A stretch of 63,477 bases of DNA, counting the filler, from Neoconidiobolus thromboides FSU 785 (taxonomy: Eukaryota; Fungi; Entomophthoromycota), in the NCBI GenBank assembly GCA_025603075.1. It is 8 parts of 8 records of this genome, joined end to end, with 100 filler letters (N's around TTAATTAATTAA, not from the genome) between each part and the next. Parts side by side here need not be neighbours in the genome. Positions count along the whole stretch, not along the records: positions 13,448 to 28,452 come from MU626599.1; 7 more parts are not named here. One strand, given 5' to 3'. The notes under the pieces were generated by a model. The model saw only the letters and a list, made by a program, of their open reading frames with translations, ran no database searches and had not been told where the DNA came from. Below, one piece after another: positions 6,883 to 28,452 of the stretch; positions within the stretch are counted from its first letter, which is position 1; each line of letters opens with the position of its first letter. The translations under genes were made by a program, and so were the position numbers.

Positions 6883-7236
6883 AACGCCTACCTATTTTTA
6901 TCTCTATTAGCGTGTTTTATATATATTATTATATAAATTTGTTATGCTTATGTTGTATTAATAAATGGTTTATCTGCACCAAATTGGTTTTTTTGTTTAA
7001 AACAAATTGATAGAATTATTTAATAAACATTGAGTTTGTTGTACATAAATTTTATGGATTATATTTATGAAAATAAGGAATGATAATATGGTACTATTAT
7101 ACAAATGACGCTAGCTACTTTACTGAAAAATCAATGATAGGGACATTAAATTACGGTATCAAATTGCTTTTACTTTAAAAGAATTTTTGTGTCAGCAATA
7201 AAATAACTGCTATTGCAATGAATAATTTAAAGGTAT

Positions 7237-7335
7237 GAGGATATGTTTTTGTGTTTAAGAGTTTTACTGATAACCTTTCTATCCAAATAGCGCTTAAAAG
7301 ATGGAAAAAGTAATGAAGCCAAGAAAAACATCCCC
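7237..7335 (+). mobile_element. MITE family A copy (~98 bp, TIR GGGGATGT...ACATCCCC)
   Basis: Matches family consensus; degenerate left TIR GAGGATAT; AT on both flanks. Confidence 0.85.
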
Positions 7336-7728
7336 ATATCTAATGAAAAATTTCAAGGATTTGTAAAAAGATCATTATAGCTTAATGCCTTTAAAAACTT
7401 TTTGATTCTTAATTATTTCAGAAAACTTGTCAATTTAGTTCATTTAATTAACCACAGCTGTTGTAACTCGTTTTAAGTTTTTTAATAATAGATTTTATAA
7501 GCAAATTATCAATGTAACTAGTTTTTAAAACCTAGTTTTTATTTTTAGCTATATTTTAATGTAAATTTTCTTTTAAATATACTAGGAATTGGGGTTCAAA
7601 AAAGTTACAATAACTGTAAAGCAATTAAATTAGCAAAAAAGTTTAAGCATTAGATATTGTTTAAGTTTAAATACGATCTGACTAAACATTAATTTTAAAA
7701 TATAATATAAACAAAAACAAATAATATT

Positions 7729-8008
7729 GGGGTTGTCCGAATTGGTTTCAGAGTTTACTTAGAAACTAATCCAAATTTTAAATTTTTAAATTTGTGTCTT
7801 TAATGTGATGATCAAATCTAAAAAGTCTAAAATTAAATCTCTTTATTTAAAACTTATTTAATTGTTTCCTTTTCTTAAACAGTTAATTTTCCTAACTATA
7901 TGTTCTATGTTGTTTCTGTTAAATATTTAATAAACATATAATATATAATTATATAATTATATAAATAGAGCTATTCGACTTTATTTTTTGTTGAAATAAA
8001 AATAAAAT
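7729..8008 (+). mobile_element. TIR element family B, left-end copy interrupted by a second copy
   Basis: GGGGTTGTCCGAATTGGTTTCAG... aligns over ~280 bp with 8011, 13025 and 41795. Confidence 0.8.
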
Positions 8009-8010
8009 AT

Positions 8011-8761
8011 GGGGCTGTCCTAATTGGTCTCAGAATCTACTTAGAAATTAATCCAAATTTAAAATTTCAAGTTTGTGTCCAATATAACGGTTAAATCTAA
8101 AAAGCCTAAAATTAAATGTCTCTATCTAAAACTTATTTTAATTGTTTCCTTTTCCTAAATAGCTAATTTTCCTAACTATATATTTTATGTTAGTTCTGTT
8201 AGATATTTAACAGATATATAATATATAACTATATGATTATATAATTATATAAATACANNNNNNNNNNNNNNNNNNNNNNNNNNNNNNNNNNNNNNNNNNN
8301 NTTAATTAATTAANNNNNNNNNNNNNNNNNNNNNNNNNNNNNNNNNNNNNNNNNNNNGTAATATGTAAAAACTATTATTACTTGTACTATATAGGGATAG
8401 TTAATTATAGTTTTAAGGCTAATCACTCCTTCCCATGTAGCTATTTGTTAACTTAGCAATATATTAATAATGTAATTATAACATTAAAATAGTTTATTTA
8501 TTTGATAACAAACCTGAAACGTTGGTTATAAAGCAGTCGATAATAAATATTTCTCAATAAAGTTTTATAAGAATATGTATTTAAGATCTAGTAGAAATTC
8601 AACTAAATTACAGTATAAACTATAATAGAATGATTTAGAACTGTGTCTGGGTACTTTTGTTTTAACAAAAGATGTGATTTTATAGAATTTTAAGCAAAGT
8701 TTTTAAAATAATTTTTTTTTCAAAAATTGGATAAAATAATGAAATTAATTTAGACAGCCCT
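8011..8761 (+). mobile_element. TIR element family B: left end (8011-8257) and right end (8358-8761) either side of an assembly gap
   Basis: Left TIR GGGGCTGTCCTAATTGGTCTC; right end GAAATTAATTTAGACAGCCCT is its approximate reverse complement. 8358-8761 also aligns with 27298-27696. Confidence 0.75.
8258..8357. other. Artificial contig spacer N44-TTAATTAATTAA-N44 (same spacer at 13348-13447, 28453-28552, 37580-37679, 42722-42821, 57028-57127, 61352-61451)
   Basis: Seven identical 100-nt blocks; the 12-mer puts stop codons in all six frames. Confidence 0.98.
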
Positions 8762-9676
8762 ATATTTTAAATAATGTGCTATCTTCATTATCTTAACACT
8801 TAATTCATGTTATTTTTAAATAATTTTATTAATCCAAAGCTAATAGTAATATCAAAAATTTCACTTTTGAAATAACTCAGAATCCAAAAGTCAATTCGAA
8901 ATCCTTGTTTGATTTAAGCTTGGTGGGGAGGTTTTTAATTCATTTATGTATTTGACAAGCAACCCCGCCATTGGATTCAAAAATTAGCATTTCAACCAAA
9001 TATTCTGAAGTTAAATTTAGTGTTGACTTTTTATTTACTATACTATAAATAATAGGTGTAAACTTGTCCAATTAAACTAACTTTATAATTTGAAGCTGTT
9101 TTATTTTCAAAAACGATTAATAAAGTAGGTAGTTTTAAGACTTTGTGGTGGTTTTAAAATCAAACCAAACCACTTTAACTCCATAACTGGCAAAATTTAA
9201 AGCTTAAGTTTAAAAATCTAATCCATTTTTGAAATAAATCAAATGATCTAAATTGCAGATGCATTTAAATAACGATCAGTTTATTTCAAAATCAGCCTCT
9301 GATTTCATTTTCCATCCCTACTAATTATACGATACATTTTTAGGGATTCTGGAGTAATTAGGAGCTTAATGGAAAATAATTTCAAGAATTAAAATCTATT
9401 GTAATTTTTTGTTGTTTTTAGTCAATTTTAAAGCAAAAAGAATTAAAGATTATATTTGACTGTATTATTTTGATACACCACTATAAGAAATTCAATTGTT
9501 AAATTTACAGATCATTTGGTATTCTTGTTATATTTTGAATTTTATAGGTTTCTAATACTGCTAAATTTAAGAATTTGTTTTTTAAAAAAAGGTCGTTATT
9601 ATTTTCCCAGAAATTTCAATCTAAGCCAAAAATCGATCATTTATGCTTTTTGTGTTGGACTTAAAACAACATTAAA

Positions 9677-9774
9677 GGTGATGTTTATTTTATTTTATTA
9701 CTTTTTCCATTTTTTAAGCACTATTTAAGCGGAAAGATTGTTAATAAAATTCTTAAACACAAAAATACATCCCT
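9677..9774 (-). mobile_element. MITE family A copy
   Basis: Reverse-oriented consensus match ending AAAAATACATCCCT. Confidence 0.85.
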
Positions 9775-10479
9775 CTTCTATAAGTTTAAATTCTTAGATA
9801 TATTTTATGGTTTATCAAAATCTAAAAAACAGAAAAACCAACACTCTCTTCTCACTTTATTTCCCCCCTTCCATGTTTTATCAAACTATTTTATAAATGA
9901 CATCTACTTCTCTTTTTTAATCTCTAAACTTTTTGATATTAGAAATATAAAGCTTATATTCTCTTTATCTCTTATTATGCATCAACCATAGTCACTTTTG
10001 ATATATACTCCGTTTGATCCAATATCCAATATTACTTGTAAAAAAAGCTTTAGAATTTTATTTTCAAATCTCACAATAACTGATACTAAGTGGTGTTTTG
10101 AGGAGAATATAAGCCTATACAAAAAGATCATATAATACTGTCTATAAGTATTTTGCATTTTTAAGTTTTAGCTTTTAGTAACTTTGTTTGGATAGCTCAA
10201 CATTCTCTTTTCTTTTAATACTCTCCATTTTACAACTAAAACCCAGAAAGGCTATTTTAATCTGAATTTCATCTTCTGATTTTAAGCATTATTACCCGCT
10301 AATAAATTATAGGAGCTTTGGTTGACTTTTTCAAGATTTTTTTAAGTTTTGATCTTGTTTAGGGTCATTAGCAGTGAAATTAATAAAATATTAACTCTAA
10401 CAATTCTGAGCTTAAATAAATGAAATAAAATAACGCTTAAAAAAATACGGATTTATTAATCTTATGTTTACCATTAAAC

Positions 10480-10960
10480 TACTTACTGCCAGACAAAATT
10501 GAATTTGATTCAACATTAATCGGTTAAAAGAGAGAGTGGCAAAGATTTGTAAACCTGAAATTTCTTATAGAAATTTTCTAACCACATATTATTTGTTAGC
10601 GTAAAAACTCTCTAGTAGTTTACTATACTTTAGTATTGTATATACTATAATCCTTGCTCTTTGCCTTCATTTTAAAGTTTTTTATATACAATTGTATTTT
10701 TATTCTATAACTTGAAATATTTATACACAAGCTTTTATTTTTCCTACCAAACTAACTTCTCCATAGTAGTTACTCATAGATAAGCCCAAGTAAGTCTATG
10801 TACTGATATTTTAAATTTTATTTCGTGATTGATTGATTTTTCAATTTTTTAAATGTTGTTTTAATTCCTATTTACCCCAACTATTCTATATTTATGACTT
10901 TTTTATATTTATGGTTATAACTTGCTTCCCATCATGTGTTCAGTTTGATTTCATATCTGT
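10480..10960 (-). pseudogene. Heavily decayed non-LTR retrotransposon (L1/Tx1-like) ORF2 relic; boundaries approximate
   Basis: On the minus strand, broken by stops and frameshifts, in the expected order: INIKKS (10912-10895), YLG (10792-10784), GKRARII, FNFVW. Confidence 0.4.
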
Positions 10961-13024
10961 TAAAAACTGTAAATTTTTGAGATAGCTTGCTTAAATACTT
11001 ATTTCAATCGTTCTTATCTAATGTTTGAAGTTTGGTAAGAGATGACACACAATTTAAACCAAAATGATATAATAAATGTTTTCTGTATTACGAGATGATT
11101 AAAATAATACTATTATAACTTACCGTAACCACTTAGCACTGATGATTTGTTGTACTTTTTATACCTATTGTATTAGTTATTTATATTGATTACGGTTTTT
11201 TTATCAAATATCATGTTTTTATTGGAATCGTGGATTTTGAAATTTTTTAGAAAATAAAATAAAGTAAATTTAAGCTCTATTTAAATATTATATAATAACA
11301 ATACACCCCCAACCAACCGAGACATGGTACGGATTTTTAATTACAATTTTATAAATCAGATTTGGTTTTATCTTAAATTGAGTGACTTAACCACTAAAAT
11401 ATATTCAAAACTACAAAAGTGAGAGGGGGGTCAAGATGATAGGTAAGTTAAGTTAGCAGCGGTATTTTCAACTTTAACCTTTGATGACAATAAATTAGTC
11501 AACATTTAGCTTATTACAATCAATAACTATAAGTCATAAATTAAATACCGGGTTTTTACACTATTTTGATTATATTAAAAGATTTACTTAATTTTTTCAA
11601 GTCAAGGGGAACCTTCTTGATTTATTGAAAATTACCAAAATTATGTTTAATTAAGGTCCCAAGCCCCAGGTCTGTAGATTATTATATTATGCGAAAAAAA
11701 TCTCACTAACCTTTTATTCTTCCTTTTTTCTATTAGCAATTTTAATAATTGATTGGGCTTTGTTGTCAACAAATAGTTTTTGATCTACGTCTTTTACATC
11801 ATCACTTAATTGAACTTGGTTACAATTATAGTCAAACATTTGCACAATTATCGGATTTTACAAATTATTATTTCTATATAATTTTCGGTTAAAGTAGCCA
11901 TATTTTTTAAAAATAAAATAATTCTAAATGCTACCAACATTTAGAGCATTAGATCAAACACCACCCCACTCACTAACCTTTAACTTTGACTGACCAAGCT
12001 CCTCCTCAAATTCTTTAGTACTTTATAATAGCTTTAGTAATATTGGTTAAACCCTTAATCATAGGTTTTTTTGACTTTAATCGAAAGTCAAGGTAGATTT
12101 ATGTAAATTTATATTATAGGATATTGAAATATTATACTTAATCACATAGTGCTGCTATTAATGTATATTTTGATGTACTTAACAGAATTTAGAAGAAAAC
12201 AATAAGCGGGATATTTTAAAATCAATTATAACTTTATAAAGCTTATATAACAATAAAAATTGTAAAATACCAAGGGAAAACTTTAAAAACAAATAATATT
12301 AGCTAGAGCTCCCCTTTTTTATCGCTAATGGATGGAAATGTTTAGCAATATATAAAATAGATTGCATAAACATGTAATAAAACTACAATTCTTATTATAG
12401 TGTCTTATTAATATTAATACAAAACAGTTCGCTGTATTATATTAAATCTGAAATATCCTAAGTAAACATGCTTGAAAATAGCTTTTCATAGAGTCTAGGA
12501 ATTTTTTAAAAATTTTAGTATTCAAATATCCCACTTACTCACTCCAAAAAGACAAAGATTCTAAAAAACTATACCTGGGCTGCATTTGAGCAGGCTTTAT
12601 TCATTCAGAAAAGACTATTTTTACTTCATATCCCAGTTTAAGGTTTACTTTTTCAATTTTTGTAATTTATTAAATAGAAACTGGGAGCCTCCCCCTTTGA
12701 GACGGAAGAAAAACACCCGATTTTACCCAACAAGGGTTCATCTTTGGACCATTTTTATTCTTATCAATAAATCATTTGAATTTTGAATTAAGAGCTTAGC
12801 TTAACTATAAGCAGAATCATCCAATTAGAAAATAACCAAACTTGCTTTCGTCATAAAAGGTTAACTGTGACTGACATTTATATAATACAGTAAACCCAGG
12901 GAATATTGAATAACTTCAAGTAATCATATTTTGTTTTTGTTTTTGAGAGTCAAAAGAGAGAAGGGGGATTATCTGGTTTTTATAAAAGGCTTTACCTTAA
13001 TAATTTGGAGAACAACTATTAGAT

Positions 13025-13447: not shown

Positions 13448-14061
13448 ACAGCCAATAAAACTAAAGTTAATTTCCAACCTTTGACAAAAGCAATAACAAA
13501 ACCAGTAATAAAAGTGGATACATATTGTATCATTAAACCAATTTTTTCTGAGATACCTTCTTGAACTAAATTAACATCACCTGAAATTCTTGAAGAAATA
13601 TCACCAGAAGAGGAGGAATCAAACCAACCCATTTCTTGAGATAAAATAGCACGGTAATAATGGTGACGAATTCTAACTGCTTGTAGTTCACCAGCAGCCA
13701 TCCATAAACTCATTTGGCCATAAGCGGTAACTAAAGTAGCTATACCAATCCAAACAAATTGTAAACATAAGCCATTGACACTAGATTGTAAGGTTTCCCT
13801 AGCACCTACTGGGTCTATTTCGACTTGTTGGACAAAAGTAGTAAATATATTGATGACACCAGCAAAGATTAAAGACATTAAGGGTTGAGCTACGCCATTC
13901 AAAATAGAACATACAATAGCTAAGAAAATGATAAATATATCTTTAGTGGTAGCAAAAGTCCATAATTTTAGTAATGGAACTGGAACAATAACTTCTCCTT
14001 TTTCTTCGACTTTTGACTTTTCATCAACAACAGCAACTTCTTTATCTTTCTTTTTAAACAT
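13448..14061 (-). CDS. ABCB (MDR/P-glycoprotein-like) transporter, 5' part truncated by a gap
   Basis: VPLLKLWTFATTKD...ILNGVAQPLMSLIF...AAGELQAVRIRHHYYRAILSQEMGWFD...GDISSRISGDVNLVQEGISEKIG...AFVKGWKLTLVLLA, the ABCB TMD1 signature. Confidence 0.95.
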
Positions 14062-16346
14062 TATAAATTATATTTTTATTGTTATAATAAATATTTTAAA
14101 TTGAATTTAAAACTTATAACAAGTTTATTTTTTGATTATTATTTTAATAGTCGAGTTGTTTTCATCTTCTTTTTATTTATATACCTAAATGATTATAAAA
14201 CAAAGTATATTTTCAGCTGTCCTTTGAATTGTGCCAGATTAGTCCAACTCTGGATAAACTCTACTGACCAATTAGATGCTACTTATATTATTATATCACT
14301 TTTTATTGGATAGATCGGAACTACGCCATCTTCTATGTTGACCCGAAATTAAAAGGATAAACTGTGCTTATTCTTAGGATTTAATGCTTTTTATTTAAAG
14401 CTAATTTTGATGCCAAACTTTAAATGTTAGATTTTCATTACCTTTACACAGGGGCTAAACTGTAAGCTTCCATTTATAATTTTAAGAATAGTATTTTTAT
14501 TGAGAGTGGTTTATTTTTAGAATTGCTATGGAAATGAGGGGAGTGGAGTTGGATTATGTAAGAATAAGATGAAACCTAAAGATGTTGTAAGTTGTCCCGA
14601 TATTTAAAAGAAAAGGGAAATTCTGGTTGGTAGTGTTTTTATTTATATCTTCAGTCTAAAATTTTAAAAATTGTATTAAGTTGGATTACTAATATCAAAA
14701 AAGAAATGTTTATTGTATACTCTTTTGCGCTGAGATAAGCAAATAACTTATCGGCTATTTCTTTTAAGCAGACTCAATTTTCTCCAAACAAAAACTTTTT
14801 GAAAATCAAAAATGCTAATCATTTACAGTTAAAACAATACTAAATGCCTAAAAAACTCTAAACTTTGTATTTGAAAATCAATATTTTAAACTTCAATTAT
14901 CAACTCCACCATATCTATCTCATTTTAAGCTCCTTCATAGCTTTAAACATCGAAACTAACTGACCTTGAGCAATTTGATTGTCTCATCTTCTCCTCAGCT
15001 TAAAAAAGAAATTCTATCACAACCAATCGGATAAGGCTATCTATGACATAATATACATTTGGATAAACTTTAATTGTATGCATAATAAAGTAAATTATAC
15101 GGTTGTCCCAGCTCTTTTATGACTTTTTAGTGATGATTTTATAATTAAATTATTTGCACAGCTCATTTTTTATAAAGCTTAATCTATAGATTTTAATTGA
15201 GTGTACTATAATTTTTTTCTTCAAATGAGTAGTTAGTTAAGTCGCAAAGAATCTGCAACAGTTATAAAATTAAAGATTTTTCTTAAGATGAAATCGGAAA
15301 TCTAACTTGTCCCGATATTATTTCTTATTAAACACACACAGATTAAGATTACGATTGAAACATTAGTTGGTTATTAATCCATTTATGTTGTCATCAAGTT
15401 GCATTAAAATCAAAGATAAATTTCTATTAAGTTCAAATATGTATAAAAGGTTAGTTTTACTATAGTAAGAGGTTTGATTTGTGTTGGCGGAAATTAGATT
15501 GTTGAAGATGCTATTAGTTTAAATAAAGTAAGTTTACTTTTATTTCATTTTGAATGTTCATATATTGGATTACTTTGTTGGAATCTATTAGCAAAAATAG
15601 CGTTATAGTAAGCTATATAAAAAAGATAAACTAAGACATCACCCTTGAATTTATTCAATAAAAATTATTATACTCCCTGATATTATAAATCAAACTTGAA
15701 ATTTAATAATTTTTAAATTTCTAATTAAAGTAAGCTATGAAACTAGTTGAATTAAACTTAAAATCAAGAAAGTTCTAAACTATCGGCTTAAAAAAATATT
15801 TTTTTAGTGGATTAATAATCATTAAATACAACTCAATCAATTTTAATAAGAATCAGACTATTAAAACTTATAAAATTTAAATGAAAGAGATAAACAAAAT
15901 GATAAAGTATAGAAATCAGATAATATATCATGTTGTTTTTATAAGCATTAGCATCTTGGTTTCAATCAGAACACTAATAAAATTTAATCTATTAACTATT
16001 CTTAGAAATTCAAAGTATATAATATGAATAAAAATCAATTTATTAAATTATGTTGATTTTTACGCCAATAAATAAGGTAGTATTCGGGTAATATACTATA
16101 TCAAGAATCAAACAATATAAACCATTTTCATCTTAAACTTTTAAAATAAACCCAATAGAAACTCACATATCTAGTTTGATTGCCTCAGCTATTATAACAA
16201 ACTCACAGAATCCAATTTATTAAACAGTTAAAAAATTCATACGAAGTTATAAATCAAACTCTTAGAACCAAGTACTATTTTAATGCAAACTTTACAATAT
16301 TGAAATTTAAATACAAATTACCAGGAAAAACTACTAATTAATAAAT

Positions 16347-16418
16347 TTCTTCATGGTCCAGTGGTTAGGATTTTCCGCTTTCACCGGAACGGCCGGGGTT
16401 CGATTCCCCGTGAGGAAG
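16347..16418 (+). tRNA. tRNA-Glu(TTC): tRNA-Glu, anticodon TTC, intronless
   Basis: Acceptor stem TTCTTCA/TGAGGAA, D-arm TGGTCCAGTGGTTAGGA, anticodon loop CTTTCAC, T-loop GGTTCGATTCC; 72 nt. Confidence 0.96.
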
Positions 16419-16465
16419 TAATGTGATTATATTAGTAAAATGTTGGACATTAATTTTTAATATAT

Positions 16466-16563
16466 GGGGATGTATTTTTGTGTTTAGCAATTTTATTAAC
16501 AATCTTTCCACTCAAATAGTGCTTAAAAGATGGAAAAAGTAATAAAGCCAAAAAAACATCCCC
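16466..16563 (+). mobile_element. MITE family A copy (near-consensus reference copy)
   Basis: AT|GGGGATGTATTTTT...TTTCCACTCAAATAGTGCTTAAAAGATGGAAA...AAAAAAACATCCCC|AT; 98 bp. Confidence 0.92.
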
Positions 16564-16659
16564 ATATATAGGTCTAGTTAATACTTTTAAATTAAAATCT
16601 TTATTAAATAGAAAAATGAAATAAAATAGTTTAATAATCTTCCACTCCTGATTTTATTT

Positions 16660-18682
16660 TTACTTATCAAGTCTAAACGAAAAAAGGTTCTAATAAATAC
16701 ATATTCTAAAACAATAAAATAAAAATTCAACTTACCTACAAATTGGATTATTATTAACCATAGAAAGATCCGTTTTATGACCAACTAAAGAACGTATATT
16801 ATCAATACCATATTTAATCATTGTTGGTCTTTCTAACGATAATCCCCAAGCAATCACTCGAACTTCTGGATCAAGTCCCATGGGTAAGATCATTTCAGGA
16901 CGGAACATACCACTGTTTCCGATTTCAACCCATTTACCAAAACCTAATTGAATTTAAGGTAAATTAAAATACATGTTAATATATTATAATATAATATAGT
17001 ATAATTCTATTCTTTTGAATATTATAAAACTTACCTTCATGCCAAGAAAAAATTTCCAAAGATGGTTCAGTATATGGATTATAAGCTGGTTTAAATCTTA
17101 AATTAGTCACACCCATTTTCATGAAAAATTGATTTAAAAAGCCAATTAAATCACCAAGAGTTAGATTTTTATCGGCAATAACACCTTCTACTTGATGAAA
17201 TTCAGCTAAATGAGTAGCATCTACCGTTTCATTTCTAAAGACTCGGTCAATTGAAAACCATTTGACGGGTTTAAATTCTTTCTGTTAAACAGAATATTAA
17301 TAAAAACAGAATAAAAAACAGAAAATATTAATTGGTTTTTACTTACCTGCTGAGCTAACTCATATAACATATTAGAAGAAATCGCAGTAGTATGAGTTCT
17401 TAATAATAATTTTTGTGCTTCTTCTTCTTTCCAATCATAACCATAGCCAAAGGAACCATACCCACCTTCAGAATGAACTTTTTTAACACGTTCCATATAA
17501 TCTCTTGGATATTTATCGGATAAAGCTGGATCTTTAATAAAAAAAGTATCATGAGCATCACGAGCTGGATGTTGTTGAGGTTGAAATAAAGCATCAAAAT
17601 TCCAAAAGGAAGTTTCAACAAATTTATTACTTGGCATTTCAGAGAAACTAGAAGAAAAAAACAAAGGTTAGTGAAGAGAAGAGAGAAGGAAAATACTTGA
17701 TTTACCCCATTTCAAAAAAAATTTTACGGAATTCTTCTCTTACTTTTAATAAGGGATGGAAATGTCCACCCATGGGATCTAAACCTGTAGCATCAAAATT
17801 ATATTGCTTAAAGCTTAATTTTTGCCATAAATCACTAAAATTAATTTGTTGAGATTATTATTGAGTATTCTTATTTTATAATTAAAAAAATTACTTTTGT
17901 AGCATATCAACAGTAAGATCAGTAGCTTGTTTTACAACAGTTAAAGCAAAGTTCACATCTTTTTCAATATCATAAGATATAATTTTTCTAATTATAAAAA
18001 GTTAGATATTATATATTGGATATTTATTGTATGTTTACTTTGGTTCAATAAGTTTACGTTTTTTGAGTTCTTTTAAAATATTTTTATCATCATGATTAAA
18101 ATTAGTTCTAATTTTAATTAAATCTTCTTTAGTATTATCAACAATAGAATCAACCTAAATAATATTCAATAATTAGTCTCAAATCAAATATTAAACTTAT
18201 AAAATCAAAACTTACACTTCTATAAATCATATCCCCATCTTTTTTTAACCATTGATTTTTAAAAGCTTTACCTTGCCCAACTTTTAAACTATTTTTATCT
18301 ACTTTATTACCCAACTCACTCAAACTAATCCCTTCAACTGGTACCGCATAATATACTTTACTTTCATGACTACCTTCATTAGCTAACAATTCACCTTCTT
18401 GAGTTAACAAGTGAATTTCTTTTTCAATAATTTTATATTTTAACATCTAATATAGAAATGAAATATAATAAAGAGTAAATAAATAAATATTTTTAGTTAG
18501 TTAGCTTCTATTTTTATGTTCTATTTTACCTCTTTACTAGCAAGTGAGTTTAATACCCCTAAGATCACTTGTTGATCTAGTTCTTCTCCATTAATGGGAT
18601 CTTTCATACCCTTACTATTGAGGGTATCAACATTCTCAATCAATTTTAAAATATATGTTTGTAATGCTTCGGTAGTTGCCAT
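16660..18682 (-). CDS. FRS2: Cytoplasmic phenylalanyl-tRNA synthetase alpha subunit; 9 exons inferred
   Basis: MATTEALQ start. Motifs [92 protein letters not shown]; ends PICRLDK* across a final intron. Confidence 0.97.
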
Positions 18683-19603
18683 ATTGTTTTTTATTTGGAA
18701 GTAAAAAGCAAGTGACTTAAAGAAATATGGAATTTCGAACTTGATGTAGATTGAGATTGTAGTTTGATTGGTGAGTCATATTTGTTGGTTTCCCATAATT
18801 TATGAAAAGATTAAATTTTTGGACAAATAATGGGCATAAAATAATGTTGATTTTGAAAGAAAAAGATAAATTTGTTAGATTAAGAGTTGTGCGTAGTTGG
18901 ATGTCTATGTATGAGTCAATTTGATATAGGATTTCTATTTAATTTAATATCATGGAATAACTAGCTTATTGATTTATAAGTTTATTTTATTTTTCATTTG
19001 TTAGTTATATTATAACAGTATAAAAATCAAACTTTATAGTTAATCTTAAGTTTTTTTTAAAATTTAAAAGATTATCCTAAAGTGTTCAATTTTGAAAACA
19101 AATGAATTATACTAAAGTAATACAAAGGAGAAAAAAAGAGTAGTTTTAATAGTTCAAGTTAACTAGGATAAGTATTTAAATTAGTAGTTATAATATTGAT
19201 TCTTTATAAAGGATAAAATAAGTAATTTAATAAATGAAATTATTTTATTGAAAATTATTTAAAAATTAATCTTTAATTAATAGTATACAAATAGCTATAG
19301 TTGTAGTATATAGCTAATAAATAAACAAAAAAAATTGAAACTTTTAAATAAAAATATAAAAATGTTTCAAAAGTAAATTTCATTAATATAATAATTTAAA
19401 AGTACTAAATAATTAATAAACATAAAACTTATACAATTAATGATTTTTATTTATTTATAGTGTTAGTTTCTATAACTTTATAATATATTTCAAAATAAAT
19501 GAAATACTTATATAATAAAGTAAAAATATTAAAACAGCTGCTATAATTGGATAAAGTTAAATAAAATAAAAACAAAAAGGATTTTTACTTAATAAATGTG
19601 TAT

Positions 19604-19701
19604 GAGGATGCTTTTTTAGTTTCATCACTTCTTCCATTTTTTAAGCGCTATTTGAGCAGAAATATTATTAGTAAAATCCTTAAGCAAAAAAATACATCCC
19701 T
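19604..19701 (-). mobile_element. MITE family A copy
   Basis: Reverse consensus match with both TIRs. Confidence 0.88.
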
Positions 19702-20216
19702 ATATGTTATATATTATGTTTTTAACTTATAATAATTTTAGGCAAAAAACATTTTGGTTGCCTTTTTTATATATTAAATTCTATATTGTCATGTTACTAA
19801 TTTTTTGTATTAATATATATATGAAATTTTCGTGTTATTCTACTTTAAAATTTATTTTATTAATTTTTATACACCCAAATTTGTATGATTTTTATTTTTT
19901 TATTTTTTTATTTTATTTTTAAGCCAGGCTATTAACTTAAAATTAAGCAGATAAATTGAAAAAAATATAAAAATAAATAATATTTAAAATACTAATTAAA
20001 TGAATATTAAGTGACAGTAATAAATAAGAATTATAGTATTAGATCAATTAATATACATGATAATTCTAACCATTTTTTCTTTCTTTGATATTTTTTATAT
20101 TAAAACTATAAAAAATGCTATAATTGATATTGAGTAAAAATTGAGCTTTAATAAACAAAAATTGTAATAAAAAATTTTAAGAATAAAATGATTTAGGGTA
20201 AACACCTTTATTGTAT

Positions 20217-20312
20217 GGGGATGTTTTTTTTAGTTTTGTTACTTTTTCCATATTTTAAGCACTATTTGTACGGAAAAATTGCTAGTAAAACTCTTAAACA
20301 AAATACATCCCC
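20217..20312 (-). mobile_element. MITE family A copy
   Basis: AT|GGGGATGTTTTTTT...AAAATACATCCCC. Confidence 0.88.
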
Positions 20313-20625
20313 GTATAGTGTTGGTTACTAGCTTTTGTTTAATAAATAGTCTCTTATTAAATATTAGTTTTATTATTATCTCAAATATTATGTAACGGTA
20401 GTGGGTTTTTTTACCCCAGACTAAATAGGTATTTTTATTTACTTAAAGCACGTTATAGTAATGTTTTTTGACCTAATAGTTTATTACTAATATTTTTCAA
20501 ATTTATGCCTAAAAAATGACCAAAACAAAGTAAAACAGGTACTCTTATCAAAATTTTAGATAAGGGTTTATAATCAAAAGAGCAATCAATACATTAAATC
20601 TTTATGTTATAAAAATTCATAAAAT

Positions 20626-20660
20626 GGGGATGTTTTTGGTTTCATCACTTTCCCATTCTA
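20626..20660 (-). mobile_element. MITE family A, truncated end fragment
   Basis: AT|GGGGATGTTTTTGGTTTCATCACTTTCCCATT, then diverges. Confidence 0.65.
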
Positions 20661-21052
20661 ATATAATAAATTACATTAAATATAAATATTTTATTAATTT
20701 ATTAATCTTATTATTTTCATTAATTTATTAATAAGGTTCTTTCACCAAGAATAAAGTTTAAAGAGCGAACCAATTATATTCATGTATTAATTATTATTGG
20801 CAATTTGGAGAATCATTTGATAAAGCTATAAACCAATAAAATAAAGAATATAATAAGTTTTATCATAATATATAGAAATTTTTCACAATTGATCCTTAAT
20901 TTTAATTCTTATACCAAAAGATTAAATTCCGCAACTAACACATCAACAAAATATAAATTTCATCATTTAGATTAGAAATATTAATCTGAACCTTTTTTAA
21001 TTTATTAAATTTAACTCAAGCAATTCACTTTATCAAAACATAAACTAAAAGA

Positions 21053-21972
21053 ATGAACAGTATCACTATAAAAAAATCCCCATCCCCAACTCAAGAGCAG
21101 AAAGACTTAAAAGCATTTATACATGCCAAAGAATTTATTCCCTCCCAGCAGAAATCTTTCAACTTCAATAGTAACATAAACAATAACTTAAACTATAACT
21201 CCTCACCACAAGGTATAATACCAATTGACAATTCAGCTTACAGTAACCAATATTATAATGAGATACCTTATTGGATGAATGAAGATAATGAAGGTAATGA
21301 TATGTATGAAAAGATGGCACAATTAGATAAAAAGGAACGATATCAAAGTAATAATAAAAGTATAGATTATGATAATTTATTAACTGGATGGGAACCTATG
21401 AGTGAAGGATATAACAATATTAAACAAGATAAAAACAATGATAAATTTCAATATAATAATATTGATAATAATATTAATAATAACATAGATTTTGAGAATT
21501 TATCTAATGAATGGGATCCAGTAAGTGAAGTTTATGATAGTAGAAAACAAATTAAAAGAGAAAATAAATCAATCTATGATAAGAATAATTTGTTAGGCTA
21601 TGACAAGGTAAGTGATTAAATTGTTGTTAAGGGTTATGGGCTAATATTTTTTGTTATTAAAGGAGAAAGGGATGAAACAAAAAAATAATAAAAAGGAGGA
21701 TTGGATTAATAATTTATTAGATGATAAAACTAATGAAGTGAATAAAAATATTTTCAATACAAATGAACAAGTAAGTAAAAATAAACTGTTAATAAAAATT
21801 ATAATTTAATATTTTTATTTTTATTAAGGAAAAAGAGAAGGATATAAAACAAGAAGACAATAACAGTAAGAAATCTAATTGGAAAGATTATTATTTAGAA
21901 GATAAATATAAGGAATTAAAATTAAAATATAATCTAGATTTTAAATTAACAAATAATAAGGGACTGGAGTTA

Positions 21973-22009
<37 letters not shown>

Positions 22010-22884
22010 TCACAAATATTGATAAAGAAAAAACCGTATTAAAAGAAATAAAAAAAAAGACAACGTTATTAACTGAAGCTGTAGAGAATATAAGTATCAA
22101 TAAAAAAGAAGAGGTTAAAAAAAGGGGTGAAATAGAAACTACAACCAATAATAATAGTCCTAAAAAAGAAGAAAAAGAAAGTAAAGTACGAATTATTTAT
22201 CCAATAAAAAGAGAGAATAATAAAATTAATAATAATTCTAAAGAAGTATTAATAAGTACCAATTATGATATCTTCCCCTTAACTAAAATTCATCGATCAG
22301 GTGTAGCTTATGGGTTGTTATTGGATTTATCTAATATTAATCAACAATCAACAATGCAAAATAATAATAACCAACAGTCAATTGAATCTATTATAATACA
22401 AACAATTAATAATACATTCCAACACATAAGTTGTTTAGAATATCGAAGTAAAACTAAATTAGAAATCGGTTTTTATAATAATAAAGATAGAGAAAGGGCA
22501 TTAAATACTCCATTAACAATTAACAATCACTCCATAGATAAAGTTAAAACCTATCATTTTGATGATCCCATCATTGGAATCACTATCACTAATCTTCCTT
22601 GTGACTATGTTGGTGAAGTAGTAGAATCTCAAGTAAACAAATTTTTATCCAAGTATGGTAATATTGTTTATTGTAAACATTTAAAGTACACCAACACCAA
22701 TATTTATATGAGATTGGTAGCGGCGGCTATTATTCCATTTGAAGGAGTAGATAAAGAGGATATTGATAGATGTTTTAAATTGAATAATTTTACTGTGTTT
22801 TGTCATCCTGAAGGAGCTGCTGAGAGGTGCTTTAAGTGTAATTCGGAAGAGCATAAATCAAATCAATGTGAAGTTGTAAACTAA
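21053..22884 (+). CDS. Three-exon gene (21053-21607, 21663-21770, 21829-22884; 572 aa): Asn-rich low-complexity N-terminus, C-terminal LINE-ORF1-like RRM region and CCHC zinc knuckle
   Basis: Two phase-0 GTAAGT...AG introns give one continuous frame. The C-terminus has LEIGFY..RERAL, ITITNLP, FLSKYGNI and CFKCNSEEHKSNQC (C-x2-C-x4-H-x4-C). Confidence 0.8.
21973..22008 (+). repeat. (AAT)12 microsatellite encoding poly-Asn
   Basis: Twelve AAT units in frame within exon 3 of the ORF1-like gene. Confidence 0.9.
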
Positions 22885-23080
22885 TAGATCTATTAGCTTA
22901 TTAACTTGATTCTACTCGACTATTCTTATTTTCTTATTAAATTCACAAATAAAGCTATAAAAAAATCAAACTTTATAAATTTATAAACCGTCTTTATTTT
23001 ATTTAAAAAAAAGATAAAATTTATCAACTGGGTCAATCTACTCAATAATCTATATTTTAATCTATATTAAATTGTATTTT

Positions 23081-24705
<1,625 letters not shown>

Positions 24706-25034
24706 TTTTTTAATTTAAAAAAAAAATTGAATCCAGAATTTGAAACTTTCAAAGATATTAAAATTGAATGGAATAAACTTGGATACTTTTTTGCAGCCAA
24801 TTAAGCTTTAATTTAGGATTTATGGAGTTGTTTTTTGGATTTTATGGTTAGCTATTAGGAGTTTTGATTTTTATGTTAGATAAGAAATGAACAAAACTAA
24901 AATTCAATGTAGTTTCTAAGAATTAGAATAAAATTAATTTTATACTGATCATTTAACCCCCCTTTAATAAAAAAAAGTAATTTTTAATACTAAAATTTCC
25001 AAATTCTTGTAAAAATGATAATCAACCTTTAAGC

Positions 25035-25106
25035 AGGACCCACCGAGAATCGAACTCGGATTACAAGGATCAAAACCTTGGGTGCTAACCATTACACCAT
25101 GGATCC
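25035..25106 (-). tRNA. tRNA-Gln(TTG): tRNA-Gln, anticodon TTG, intronless
   Basis: Reverse complement GGATCCATGGTGTAATGGTTAGCACCCAAGGTTTTGATCCTTGTAATCCGAGTTCGATTCTCGGTGGGTCCT folds as a 72-nt cloverleaf. Confidence 0.96.
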
Positions 25107-25576
25107 CGAATCTACTAGCAATACGCAATATTTTAAAATTTATAAATACTAACTAAACCATAATCCAATCCAGCGGGAAGCATTTCAATAGAAATAAGAA
25201 AATAGACAATGGTCCTTGTATAAAGTTGAAGTATATCTTTTCGTATATCGATTGATAGTTTTTTCTAATATTTGTAAACTCGAAGCTTTTTTTATTGAAA
25301 AAAATTATTTTTATATTGATATATATTATTTTGACTTTGATTCTGATTTTAATATTTTATGTTTTAAGTTTTAAATTTATAAAATTTAGTTATTTTCTAT
25401 TTCTTTTGCAGTTCTAATAAAATAAATATCAGAGTACTATAATATCATATATCAAATATTTTACTATTATGCTATGTTTTTTTTTAAAGTGTATTTATAT
25501 TTTAATATTTATTATTTTAAATTTATGCAATTTAAAATTAAGTTGCTGATAAATTAATAAAAATATAAACAAATAT

Positions 25577-25674
25577 GAGAATGTTTTTTTGACTTCATTA
25601 CTTTTTCCATCTTTTAAGCGCTATTTGAGTGGAAAAGTTATTAGTAAAATTCTTAAACACAAAAATACATCCCC
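25577..25674 (-). mobile_element. MITE family A copy
   Basis: Reverse consensus match; right end AAAAATACATCCCC. Confidence 0.88.
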
Positions 25675-26003
25675 CTATATTAAATAAAAGTAGTTATAGT
25701 TTAAATCTTTAATTATAATTAGCTAAAAAATAACAAAATTAACAAAATTAATAGTTAAAATTTAGGCTAAAAGATATCGAAGTTATGATAGAAACTAAAA
25801 CAATATAAATAATAATAAAAATAACTCTATTTGATAAAAACAAGTTTAAAACTTATAAATATTTAAAAAGATTATTAACTAATATATAAAAAGCTATTTT
25901 AAATTTAAACAAGATTGCCTGAAACAAACTAAGTATAAAATTAGAATTCTACATTCATTGATTAATAAACTAAAACAGTATGTGTTGATTATTAAAATTG
26001 ATT

Positions 26004-26101
26004 GGGGGTATTTTTTTTAGTTTTATCACTTCTTCTATTCTCTAAACGCTATTTGAATGAAAAAAGTATTGATAAAATTCTTAAAAAAAGAATACATCAC
26101 C
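26004..26101 (-). mobile_element. MITE family A copy
   Basis: GGGGGTATTTTTTT...AATACATCACC|AT. Confidence 0.82.
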
Positions 26102-26752
26102 ATTGATTTATACTCAATATCAATACTATCTACATGGTTGTCAAATCAATCCTCAAAGTCCATCATTTTAGTATGCTGTAAGAAATACTCAAAGTTGCGT
26201 AATTCAATTTTTAGCAACCAAAAATGGAAATTATATACCTTGAATTTTAAAGTGTCAGCTGCTGCAATTTTATTGCGACTAATTATCAATTTGAGAACAA
26301 AATTTTGCTATATTTTAAAAAATGGCATCAAAAAAGCAAAACAAACATATAAGTGGTTCTAAAAATTACCGCAAATTTGCTCGTAATAGAGCTATAGTAG
26401 TTATATATAATTGAATTATTGTCTATGGTTATACCTTTGTAGTAGTTTATAATTTTCGACTTGGTTGGACAAGATAATTAACATTTATTAGGAGTAATGG
26501 AATTAAGGTGTGAGTCGGTAAGAAGTATTGCTTATTTTATTGATGAAGAGTTGATAGTGAAAGGTTAAATGAAGCAGGAGATAAAGTTAGTACATTAAAT
26601 TGATGATAAAAATGAACTAGTATTAGAAAATAGAATAAACTATTAGATATATTCTATTGCTTTTTACTAATAAAGAGGTTATCAAATCTTATATAACCAT
26701 TTGGATAACTTAAGACTATTAGATTAATGTTTAATAATTTCAAATAATGTAT

Positions 26753-26850
26753 GAGGATGTATTCTATTATTTGAGAGTTTTACTAACACTTTTTCGCTCA
26801 AATAGCGGCTTAAAAAGTGGAAAAAGTAATGAAACCAAAAAAACATCCCT
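26753..26850 (+). mobile_element. MITE family A copy
   Basis: AT|GAGGATGT...AAAAAAACATCCCT|AT. Confidence 0.82.
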
Positions 26851-27297
26851 ATCAGGTAAAATAGATATCAATCAATTTCAAGATTTGAGACTTTTATTTG
26901 TGAACATAATAAAATTAATAACTCAATTGTTAATAATGGAGAAATAGATATAATTTTTAAAAAGTATGAAAGAAACAAAAATATAAAATAATAGAAATAC
27001 AAGGTAAAGAAGTATTTACACTTTATTGAATGTAACAATAGACTACATTGTTATTCAGTATCCAACACATCAAAAAAAGCGACATAATTCCAATTAAAGT
27101 TATAGAGTCTATAGAAAATAGAAAAACTAAAAGATCAATTCCAGCTTACCTTACGAAAATAACAGAATTTAAAATTTTCGATATTTACTAAGCAAGTAAG
27201 CAGTTTGTTGAATGATAGAAATAGATTATTAAATGTTAATATCACTTAAGTCATTAATATATAAGTTAATAAATAGTCGAATGATAAGTAACTATAA

Positions 27298-27696
27298 TAA
27301 TATGTAAAAACTATTATTATATTACTTGTACTATATAGGGATGATTAATTATAGTTTGGGATTAATCACTCCCTCCCGTGAAGCTATTTATTAACTTTGA
27401 TATACCAATGATGCAATTACAACATTAAAATAGTTTATTTATTTGATAACAAATCTGCAATGTTGATTATAAAGCAATCGATAATAAATGTTTCTCAATA
27501 AAGTTTCATAAAAATATGTATTTAAGATCTAGTAGAAATTCAGCTAACTCACAGTATAAACTATAATACAATAATTTAGAACTGCGTCCGGGTACTTTTG
27601 TTCTAATAAAAAATTTGTTTTTATAGAATTTTTAAGTTTTTAAAATAAAAATATTTAAAAACTGGATAAAATAATGAAACTAATTTAGACATTCCC
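27298..27696 (+). mobile_element. TIR element family B, right end abutting the ABCB pseudogene (left limit uncertain)
   Basis: About 400 bp aligns with 8358-8761; ends GAAACTAATTTAGACATTCCC|AT. Confidence 0.78.
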
Positions 27697-28452
27697 ATAT
27701 GGTCTTTCACTAACAATGAAAATATTCTTATAGTCATCTTAGCCACCATGTATTCAATATTGATGGAGTAGCACAACCTTTAATATCTTCAATCTTTGTT
27801 ATTGTATTAAACATGGTTACAATTTATACTTCGAAATTTAAAACCGATACGGTAGGAGGAGCTAAAACATTACAATCTAATGTGAATGGCTTATGTTTAC
27901 AATTTGTTTGGATTGGTATAGCTACTTTAGTTACCGCTTATGACTAAATGAGTTTATGGATGGCTGCTGGTGAATTACAAGCAGTTAGAATTCGTCACCA
28001 TTATTACCGTGCTATTTTATCTCAAGAAATGGGTTGGTTTGATTCCTCCTCTTCTGGTGATATTTCTTCAAGAATTTCAGGTGATGTTAATTTAGTTCAA
28101 GAAGGTATCTCAGAAAAAATTGGTTTAATGATACAATATGTATCCACTTTTATTACTGGTTTTGTTATTGCTTTTGTCAAAGGTTGGAAATTAACTTTAG
28201 TTTTATTGGCTGTCGTCCCTTTATTAGCTGGTTGTGGTGCATTCATTGCCAAATTAATCTCTTCAAAGTCCGCTGGTGGTCAATCAGCTTATGGCGAAGC
28301 TGGTTCTATTGCTGAAGAAGTATTTGCTGCTATTAGAACTGTCCACTCATTTGGGTCTCAAAAGCGTGAAGTTGATCGTTATGAAACTAAAATCTTTAAA
28401 GCACGTAAAGATGGATTTAGGAAAGCCATTATTACTGGATTAGGTATTGGTA
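27697..28452 (+). pseudogene. ABCB transporter paralog: 5' end lost at a TE junction, one frameshift and one premature stop; runs into a gap
   Basis: IWSFTNNENILIVILATMYSIL/(-1 nt)GVAQPL... diverged from the 13448-14061 copy, then near-identical from about 27875. TAT GAC TAA ATG replaces TAT GGC CAA ATG. Confidence 0.8.

Follow-up and report, generated by a model that had tools for sequence, protein, structure and literature searches.

Host genes made from the first open reading frame (ORF1) of long interspersed nuclear elements, or LINEs, are very rare. The mammalian gene L1TD1 derives from L1 ORF1 and encodes an RNA-binding protein of ribonucleoprotein particles (RNPs) and condensates with links to the control of L1 (PMC4161310, PMC11014241, PMC11925450); it is described as the sole mammalian protein-coding gene to have been domesticated from L1 (PMC4161310, PMC11014241). 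The one fungal case found in the literature is a gene family of Blumeria graminis, EKA (AVRk1/AVRa10), which likewise evolved from a LINE ORF1 (PMC4641428). Among vertebrate proteins, ZCCHC3 acts as an L1 restriction factor in stress granules (PMC10351740). Type I LINE ORF1s, a class of Khazina and Weichenrieder, are defined by an RNA recognition motif (RRM) placed directly before a CCHC zinc knuckle (PMC4120745). Here, we describe a gene of the entomophthoromycote fungus Neoconidiobolus thromboides FSU 785 (assembly GCA_025603075.1) that lies on the plus strand at 21053-22884 of a 63,477-nucleotide (nt) stretch of joined genomic parts (the window), in an AT-rich piece (13448-28452, ~25% GC, record MU626599.1). 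We consider it likely to be a transcribed, twice-spliced host gene whose C-terminal ~200 residues come from the ORF1 of a type I element that lacks long terminal repeats (non-LTR), or LINE. An earlier interpretation of the window by eye (the sequence-only reading) had proposed such an ORF1-derived host gene, kept intact, and homology to a LINE ORF1, splicing, constraint and the absence of the second frame, ORF2, support it. As to the direction of the transfer, we infer that it ran from the transposable element to the host.

The described systems resemble this gene in different respects. L1TD1 shares with it a coding sequence taken from a LINE ORF1 and the loss of ORF2, but is built on a type II ORF1 (coiled coil, single RRM and C-terminal domain; Transposase_22), is mammalian, and has no sequence relation to it. 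The EKA genes are fungal genes co-opted from part of a LINE ORF1, as is the gene described here; however, they comprise more than 1000 truncated transposon copies of an ascomycete plant pathogen, with members that act as effectors, whereas the N. thromboides gene is one locus between housekeeping genes, with introns, a conserved RRM-CCHC region and no secretion signal. ZCCHC3 has two RNA-binding domains (RBD_ZCCHC3_1st/2nd) followed by CCHC knuckles, and its feature similarity to our protein in the ESM Atlas is 0.91, but no Pfam or HMMER match connects the two, and this likeness, which comes from language-model features, is a lead only.

The gene has three exons. The first (21053..21607; 185 codons, residues 1-185) opens with the ATG at 21053 and encodes a segment rich in Asn, Lys and Glu; the second (21663..21770; 36 codons, residues 186-221) is placed both by direct reading and by cDNA; and the third (21829..22884; 351 codons and a TAA stop, residues 222-572) begins with ~150 residues of low complexity. 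They are separated by two GT..AG introns in phase 0, one of 55 nt (21608..21662) and one of 58 nt (21771..21828). Direct reading of the joined exons gives a frame of 572 amino acids whose sole stop is the terminal one, and the chance of a 351-codon open frame at the base composition of the piece is ~6e-15 (stop probability 0.089 per codon). This bears out the sequence-only reading, which had assembled the same frame through two canonical phase-0 introns. The strings that it quoted from the C terminus (GLLLDLS, ITITNLP and the rest) are all present in the translation, and the 196 nt that it measured to the stop of the neighboring gene KRR1 on the other strand are exact. It miscounted only the end of the protein: after the last knuckle Cys there are four residues (EVVN) rather than five, followed by the stop at 22882-22884.

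Transcription and splicing were examined with Logan contigs from four public runs (X1, X2, X5 and X6, under three coded organism labels) placed on 20400-24800. These contigs represent cDNA, as they also lack five GT..AG introns of KRR1. The joint of intron 1 is present in all four runs at 21604/21660, which equals 21607/21663 with the cut shifted by 3. For intron 2, an X1 piece stops exactly at 21770, X2 and X5 pieces start exactly at 21829, and contig 19 of X6 spans all three exons, passing from 21660-21771 to 21854-21963; the 21 letters between these two pieces correspond to the beginning of exon 3 in diverged form. Both junctions for which the sequence-only reading had sought RNA evidence (21607/21663 and 21770/21829) are therefore joined in transcripts, under three organism labels, and the lack of spliced reads that it had named as damaging to its proposal is not what the four runs contain. 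At the 5' end, contigs start at 21009 in X1 and X5 and at 20992 in X2. The 20 letters ahead of the X1 contig at 21009 we take to be Illumina adapter. The transcript start thus lies near 21009, giving a 5' untranslated region (UTR) at 21009..21052, and the ATG at 21053 is the first within the transcript, with none upstream of it there. At the 3' end, X1 contig 2 stops at 22940 and X6 contig 20 at 22946, placing the 3' UTR at 22885..22940. The gene is well expressed, and the contig depth over it, itself a poor measure of expression, is equal to or greater than that over KRR1.

The relatives of the C-terminal region lead to a LINE. An exhaustive phmmer (HMMER) search with the last 233 residues against 1.84 billion (1.84e9) representative proteins gave nine matches with E < 1e-3, of which two (P0003 and P0008) are repeat proteins that were discarded as spurious. 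The seven real ones match the C-terminal ~200 residues at 25-34% identity, none above 34%. They comprise a hypothetical protein of Conidiobolus coronatus NRRL 28638 (P0002; KXN70332), three proteins of N. thromboides FSU 785 itself (P0001, P0004 and P0005; KAI9291625, KAI9292422 and KAI9292270), and three short sequences of environmental or Logan origin (P0007, P0009 and P0006, the last from a marine metagenome). The alignment of the C. coronatus protein with the gene product takes in the two RRM-like units as well as the knuckle (30% identity; phmmer E 7.6e-9; pairwise BLASTP E 3e-13), and a profile of six family members that excluded the window sequence recovered the domain of the gene with an hhalign probability of 99.3% and an E of 1.7e-20. 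In its own locus (L002), P0002 is an intact frame of 423 amino acids (8001-9272) followed by an ORF2 (9272-12556) whose ATG begins with the final base of the ORF1 stop in a TAATG stop/start overlap. This ORF2 is open for at least 1094 amino acids, as far as an assembly gap, contains Exo_endo_phos and RVT_1 domains, and has human L1 ORF2p as its best PDB match (E 2e-38). P0002 is thus a genuine LINE ORF1, the first frame of an apparently intact LINE with an apurinic endonuclease (APE) and reverse transcriptase (RT) ORF2 directly downstream, and it is to such a verified ORF1 that the N. thromboides gene is homologous. The best matches are hence this LINE ORF1 and ORF2-less copies, and not the ordinary host CCHC proteins of the Air1/Gis2 type that the sequence-only reading had named as the outcome most harmful to it.

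The two proteins have the same RRM-RRM-CCHC order, but their settings differ. The C. coronatus ORF1 is the first cistron of its element, intronless, 47% in GC, and carries a Pro/Thr-rich C-terminal tail; the N. thromboides gene has no ORF2, two introns, host-like GC, an N-rich extension of 370 residues and a stop four residues past the knuckle. The C. coronatus LINE, at 47% GC inside flanks of 26-31%, is a strong compositional outlier, which suggests that it was recently active or recently arrived. The annotation of C. coronatus calls only the ORF1 of this LINE as a gene. No orthologue of the N. thromboides gene was found in the protein collections searched (the 1.84e9 representatives and a word index), and so it has apparently never been annotated. 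The word-index search with exon 3 region 150-351 gave no match, and when an eight-sequence alignment of the family (A1) was used, the only proteins retrieved were two members of that alignment; for this family, the index is thus too coarse.

The predicted fold of the C-terminal module agrees with a type I ORF1. AlphaFold2 was usable only with A1 (the single-sequence model had a predicted local distance difference test score, pLDDT, of 36), and with these eight sequences it reached a mean pLDDT of 74.6, with most of residues 70-210 of the fragment at 85-93. This model contains two β-α-β-β-α-β units, which end four residues ahead of the knuckle. The first RRM-like unit (residues ~380-464; 22303..22557; pLDDT 65-90) has an N/Q-rich insertion after strand 1, and the second (residues ~468-550; 22567..22815) is the best conserved part of the family (ITITNLP...YGNIVYCKHL). 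A single CCHC knuckle, C-x2-C-x4-H-x4-C, follows at residues 555-568 (22828..22869); it was read directly as a motif and aligns with the knuckles of P0001, P0002, P0004, P0006 and P0009. Foldseek comparison with the PDB returned tandem-RRM proteins only (HuD, HuR, Sxl, hnRNP A1 UP1, IMP3, Hrp1 and PABP), with a probability of 1.0 and with low TM-scores, as the domains are oriented differently relative to each other. Its matches include 1b7f (Sxl) and 2cjk (Hrp1), both reported as top templates for type I ORF1 RRMs (PMC4120745). By sequence, the family profile gives weak matches to retroviral nucleocapsid knuckles (E 1.6e-4) and to the hnRNP A1 RRMs (E 4e-3). Feature and shape searches of the ESM Atlas pointed to arthropod and cnidarian CCHC proteins and to ZCCHC3-type proteins with RNA-binding domains and CCHC knuckles, as leads only, and a phmmer search of PDB sequences with the domain produced no meaningful match. 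Model and motif together thus place RRM folds immediately before a CCHC knuckle, the arrangement of tandem RRM-like folds and C-x2-C-x4-H-x4-C by which the sequence-only reading had recognized an ORF1. Type I LINE ORF1s share with the gene RRMs that are noncanonical and escape Pfam RRM_1; they differ in residing inside a retrotransposon and, in many cases, in having three knuckles instead of one.

At the locus itself, the marks of a mobile LINE are missing. A tblastn search with a related ORF2 over the 15-kb piece found no endonuclease or RT remnant, and reading of the sequence found no poly(A) tract after the stop, as had been claimed at the outset, and no LINE 3' end. The gene is therefore not a LINE: it has no downstream APE/RT ORF2, and it is neither intronless nor followed by a 3' tail. 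Nor is it an intronless ORF1-only unit with a LINE 3' end of the HAL1 kind, as its introns are spliced. Its base composition (25% GC) is close to that of the KRR1 exons (27%), against 47% for the C. coronatus LINE. What is expected of a domesticated gene, an intact frame transcribed and processed like a host gene and kept by purifying selection between species, is what we observe, the latter on a partial sample of substitutions and indels. Within 22371-22836, 11 of the 12 listed differences from organisms B and C fall at third codon positions (P = 4.7e-5) and 10 of the 12 are synonymous. Insertions between relatives measure 3, 3 and 18 nt in the coding sequence and 8 nt in the 3' UTR. The ORF1-derived domain of the gene is thus under purifying selection. 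The sequence-only reading had accepted that copies followed by ORF2 and evolving with a neutral ratio of nonsynonymous to synonymous change (dN/dS) would tell against it; there is no ORF2 in the piece and the listed changes are mostly synonymous.

Several points weigh against a domesticated gene. The constraint was gauged on 40 of 173 differences, the organism labels are coded and may stand for close relatives (divergence from organism C is ~6-10%), and in relatives the gene itself was seen as transcripts. The module is faint to standard models: Pfam zf-CCHC matches the knuckle with an E of 0.013 and 16 bits, under the cutoff of 20.8, and Pfam searches up to E 10 gave no RRM/RRM_1 match, nor one to Transposase_22 or the ZCCHC3 RNA-binding domains. 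A tree of 10 family members leaves the gene unplaced, on the shortest terminal branch. Finally, N. thromboides has at least six ORF2-less copies of the family, several of them broken, so that ORF2-less copies can also be decaying relics.

This last point is the basis for regarding the gene itself as a relic or an ORF1-only nonautonomous retroelement of the HAL1 kind, that is, the 5' part of a LINE without ORF2, or one mobilized in trans, with no host function. The copies at issue lie, among other places, at 1644-2078 and 8001-8585 of locus L003 and at 7036-7584 and 7962-8807 of locus L004; they occupy gene-poor stretches rich in miniature inverted-repeat transposable elements (MITEs), some are in tandem and some have in-frame stops, and MITE copies are found upstream of our gene as well. 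The copies that were compared with it directly (P0001, P0004 and P0005), which belong to the same family (E 3e-10 to 2e-5), have no ORF2 after them and sit in AT-rich surroundings, are short (178-268 amino acids) and without the long N-terminal region, unlike the gene, and at 25-28% identity, and by the tree, are not its orthologues. Against a relic stand the two spliceosomal introns removed in vivo, since retrotransposed copies lose introns; the intact 572-residue frame with a strong excess of synonymous changes among the differences listed; the host-like base composition without a poly(A) tail; and the conservation of transcripts under three organism labels. Dead LINEs, moreover, are usually 5'-truncated, so that it is ORF1 that is lost and not ORF2. 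We therefore regard a relic as improbable.

In the reverse direction, or under shared ancestry, an old host family with an RRM-RRM-CCHC plan would have donated the module to the Conidiobolus LINE, and our gene would have no transposon in its past. ORF1s are known to evolve in a modular, reticulate manner (PMC4120745), the family has to date been found almost only in the Conidiobolus/Neoconidiobolus lineage, and the 10-member tree, besides giving the gene its short branch, lacks resolution, supporting neither orthology to an N. thromboides copy nor nesting within LINE ORF1s. However, RRM(s) followed by CCHC is a widespread and ancient type I plan, seen in the I, Jockey, R1, Tad1, plant L1 and L2 clades (PMC4120745), and animal proteins of this plan, CCHC and ZCCHC3-like, make up the closest Atlas clusters in both features and shape. 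The other host-resident copies decay, as expected of transposon debris, and the family extends to the environmental members (P0006 from the marine metagenome, P0007 and P0009). A transfer from host to LINE is hence little favored, and we hold it as improbable as a relic. Very unlikely indeed is the reading of the gene as a common host RNA-binding protein, akin to RBM4/Lark, ZCRB1 or Air1/Gis2 and like ORF1 in architecture only, even though RBM4 (two RRMs and CCHC) and ZCRB1 (RRM and CCHC) have the same plan and give weak profile matches (ZCRB1, 2e5h, E 0.019; RBM4B, 2dnq, E 0.62), because Pfam RRM_1 finds nothing even at E 10, no such protein is among the matches of the exhaustive or word searches, a single knuckle follows the two RRM-like folds instead of the 5-7 of Air1/Gis2, and the significant homology is to a LINE ORF1; on the grounds of the single knuckle, the missing RRM_1 and the absence of such matches, an Air1/Gis2-, RBM4/ZCRB1- or SRSF7-type identity was rejected.

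For a domesticated ORF1, the manner of capture bears on the N-terminal region. Its 370 residues, of which Asn makes up 20%, Lys 15% and Glu 10%, are probably disordered; they include 12 consecutive Asn encoded at 21973-22008 in exon 3. No relative of this region was found in Pfam, in the Atlas (where no match was usable) or by tblastn against the related loci. Between organisms, it diverges by ~8-11% at the nucleotide level, against ~6% for the C terminus, and stays in frame. A 15-residue motif containing W occurs in it twice, at residues 105-119 (21365-21409) and 147-161 (21491-21535), with the consensus [YF][DE]NL(L)[TS]..W[ED]P[MV]SE[GV]Y and a GW dipeptide in the first copy; a role as a short linear interaction motif is possible. 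The ORF1-like part (residues ~375-572) shares exon 3 with ~150 residues of the N-rich region, and their junction has no intron. The claim of the sequence-only reading that capture had made an ORF1 the terminal exon of a host gene thus found no support, given the uninterrupted junction and the N-terminal region without relatives. As no intron parts the N terminus from the ORF1-like part, terminal-exon capture is one possibility among several, another being a 5' extension of the ORF1 with low-complexity expansion, followed later by intron gain.

As a host gene, the locus would have inherited an ORF1 module of two noncanonical RRMs and one CCHC knuckle from a type I LINE, and purifying selection would have kept this module fused to the ~370-residue Asn/Lys-rich N terminus. 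The gene cannot move because ORF2 is gone. Like ORF1 proteins, the tandem RRMs and the knuckle would bind single-stranded RNA and act as a nucleic acid chaperone, and the low-complexity, Asn-rich N terminus would probably promote multivalent assembly of RNPs or granules. By comparison with L1TD1 and ZCCHC3, the cellular role would most likely be that of an RNP component acting on retrotransposon or other mRNAs; by the same analogy, the protein may act on LINE RNPs (PMC11925450, PMC10351740). A more specific version, which we offer as a tentative possibility drawn from the same parallels, is a lineage-specific retrotransposon-control factor of early-diverging fungi: it would bind the RNA or ORF1 of related LINEs, and its prion-like Asn-rich N terminus would sequester LINE RNPs in granules, making it a dominant-negative decoy or restriction factor. 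If this were true, it would be a fungal counterpart of L1TD1 and ZCCHC3 that arose independently from a type I ORF1.

The gene is flanked by housekeeping genes, that of the phenylalanyl-tRNA synthetase alpha subunit (PheRS-alpha; minus strand, ~17.2-18.4 kb) and KRR1. The latter is a convergent neighbor and not part of the element; it lies on the minus strand at 23081..24700 (to ~24.7 kb), was identified by Pfam KH_KRR1_1st and KH_KRR1_2nd, as the sequence-only reading had named it, and has as its stop codon the reverse complement of 23081-23083. The 196-nt spacer between the two stops (22885-23080) is fully covered by cDNA contigs of the 22837-23080 region, and one contig links the last exons of KRR1 to 22837, a position within the final 48 nt of the ORF1-like coding sequence. 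With the contigs of the gene reaching 22940-22946, the convergent mRNAs of the gene and KRR1 therefore probably overlap by ~100 nt at their 3' ends, the contigs themselves carrying no strand. In the runs of organism B (X2 and X5), there are two variants of 22638-22836 at similar depth: one is the window sequence, and the other has the same 11 mostly synonymous differences as organism C. Such a pair could stem from two alleles, from two nuclei, from paralogues or from a mixed sample.

Among the other N. thromboides copies of the family, two carry in-frame stops, one of which is skipped by the model KAI9292422, and translation of the KAI9292422 gene in its locus does not yield the product on record. 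Two copies form a tandem pair with 73% nucleotide identity, and their products lack a complete knuckle. The MITE-like repeat is a dispersed sequence of ~105 bp with terminal inverted repeats (ATATGGGGATGT ... ACATCCCCATAT). Six copies lie in the 15-kb piece, at 16457-16569, ~19564-19717, 20214-20317, ~25549-25730, 26003-26103 and 26735-26855, two of which sit upstream of the gene, in a spacer that is very rich in AT. The same repeat family, at 80-92% identity, has many copies in loci L001, L003 and L004, where it fills the gene-poor stretches around the ORF1-like copies. Two tRNA genes, tRNA-Glu(TTC) (16346-16419, plus strand) and tRNA-Gln(TTG) (25033-25107, minus strand), are each found 30-450 bp from a MITE-like copy. 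At its ends, the piece carries an inverted repeat of 349 nt with 98% identity (13448-13796 and 27865-28213), whose arms are each the 5' part of an ABC transporter gene (ABC_membrane); the left arm lies on the minus strand and the right arm on the plus strand. Because one arm begins at the edge of the piece, the full length of the repeat may exceed 349 nt. Either a true inverted duplication of the gene on both sides of a 14-kb segment or an assembly artifact could explain it.

The N. thromboides gene fits into the rare class of host genes derived from LINE ORF1s that includes L1TD1 and EKA, and differs from both in its type I ORF1 source, in its lineage and in its intron-bearing locus between housekeeping genes. 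It presents a type I ORF1 module in an expressed and constrained gene of Entomophthoromycotina, while a related, intact LINE persists in a relative of the host. An active ORF1 and its domesticated cousin would form a tractable pair, both for the study of ORF1 function and for that of the repeated recruitment of such proteins by hosts to control or exploit retrotransposon RNPs.

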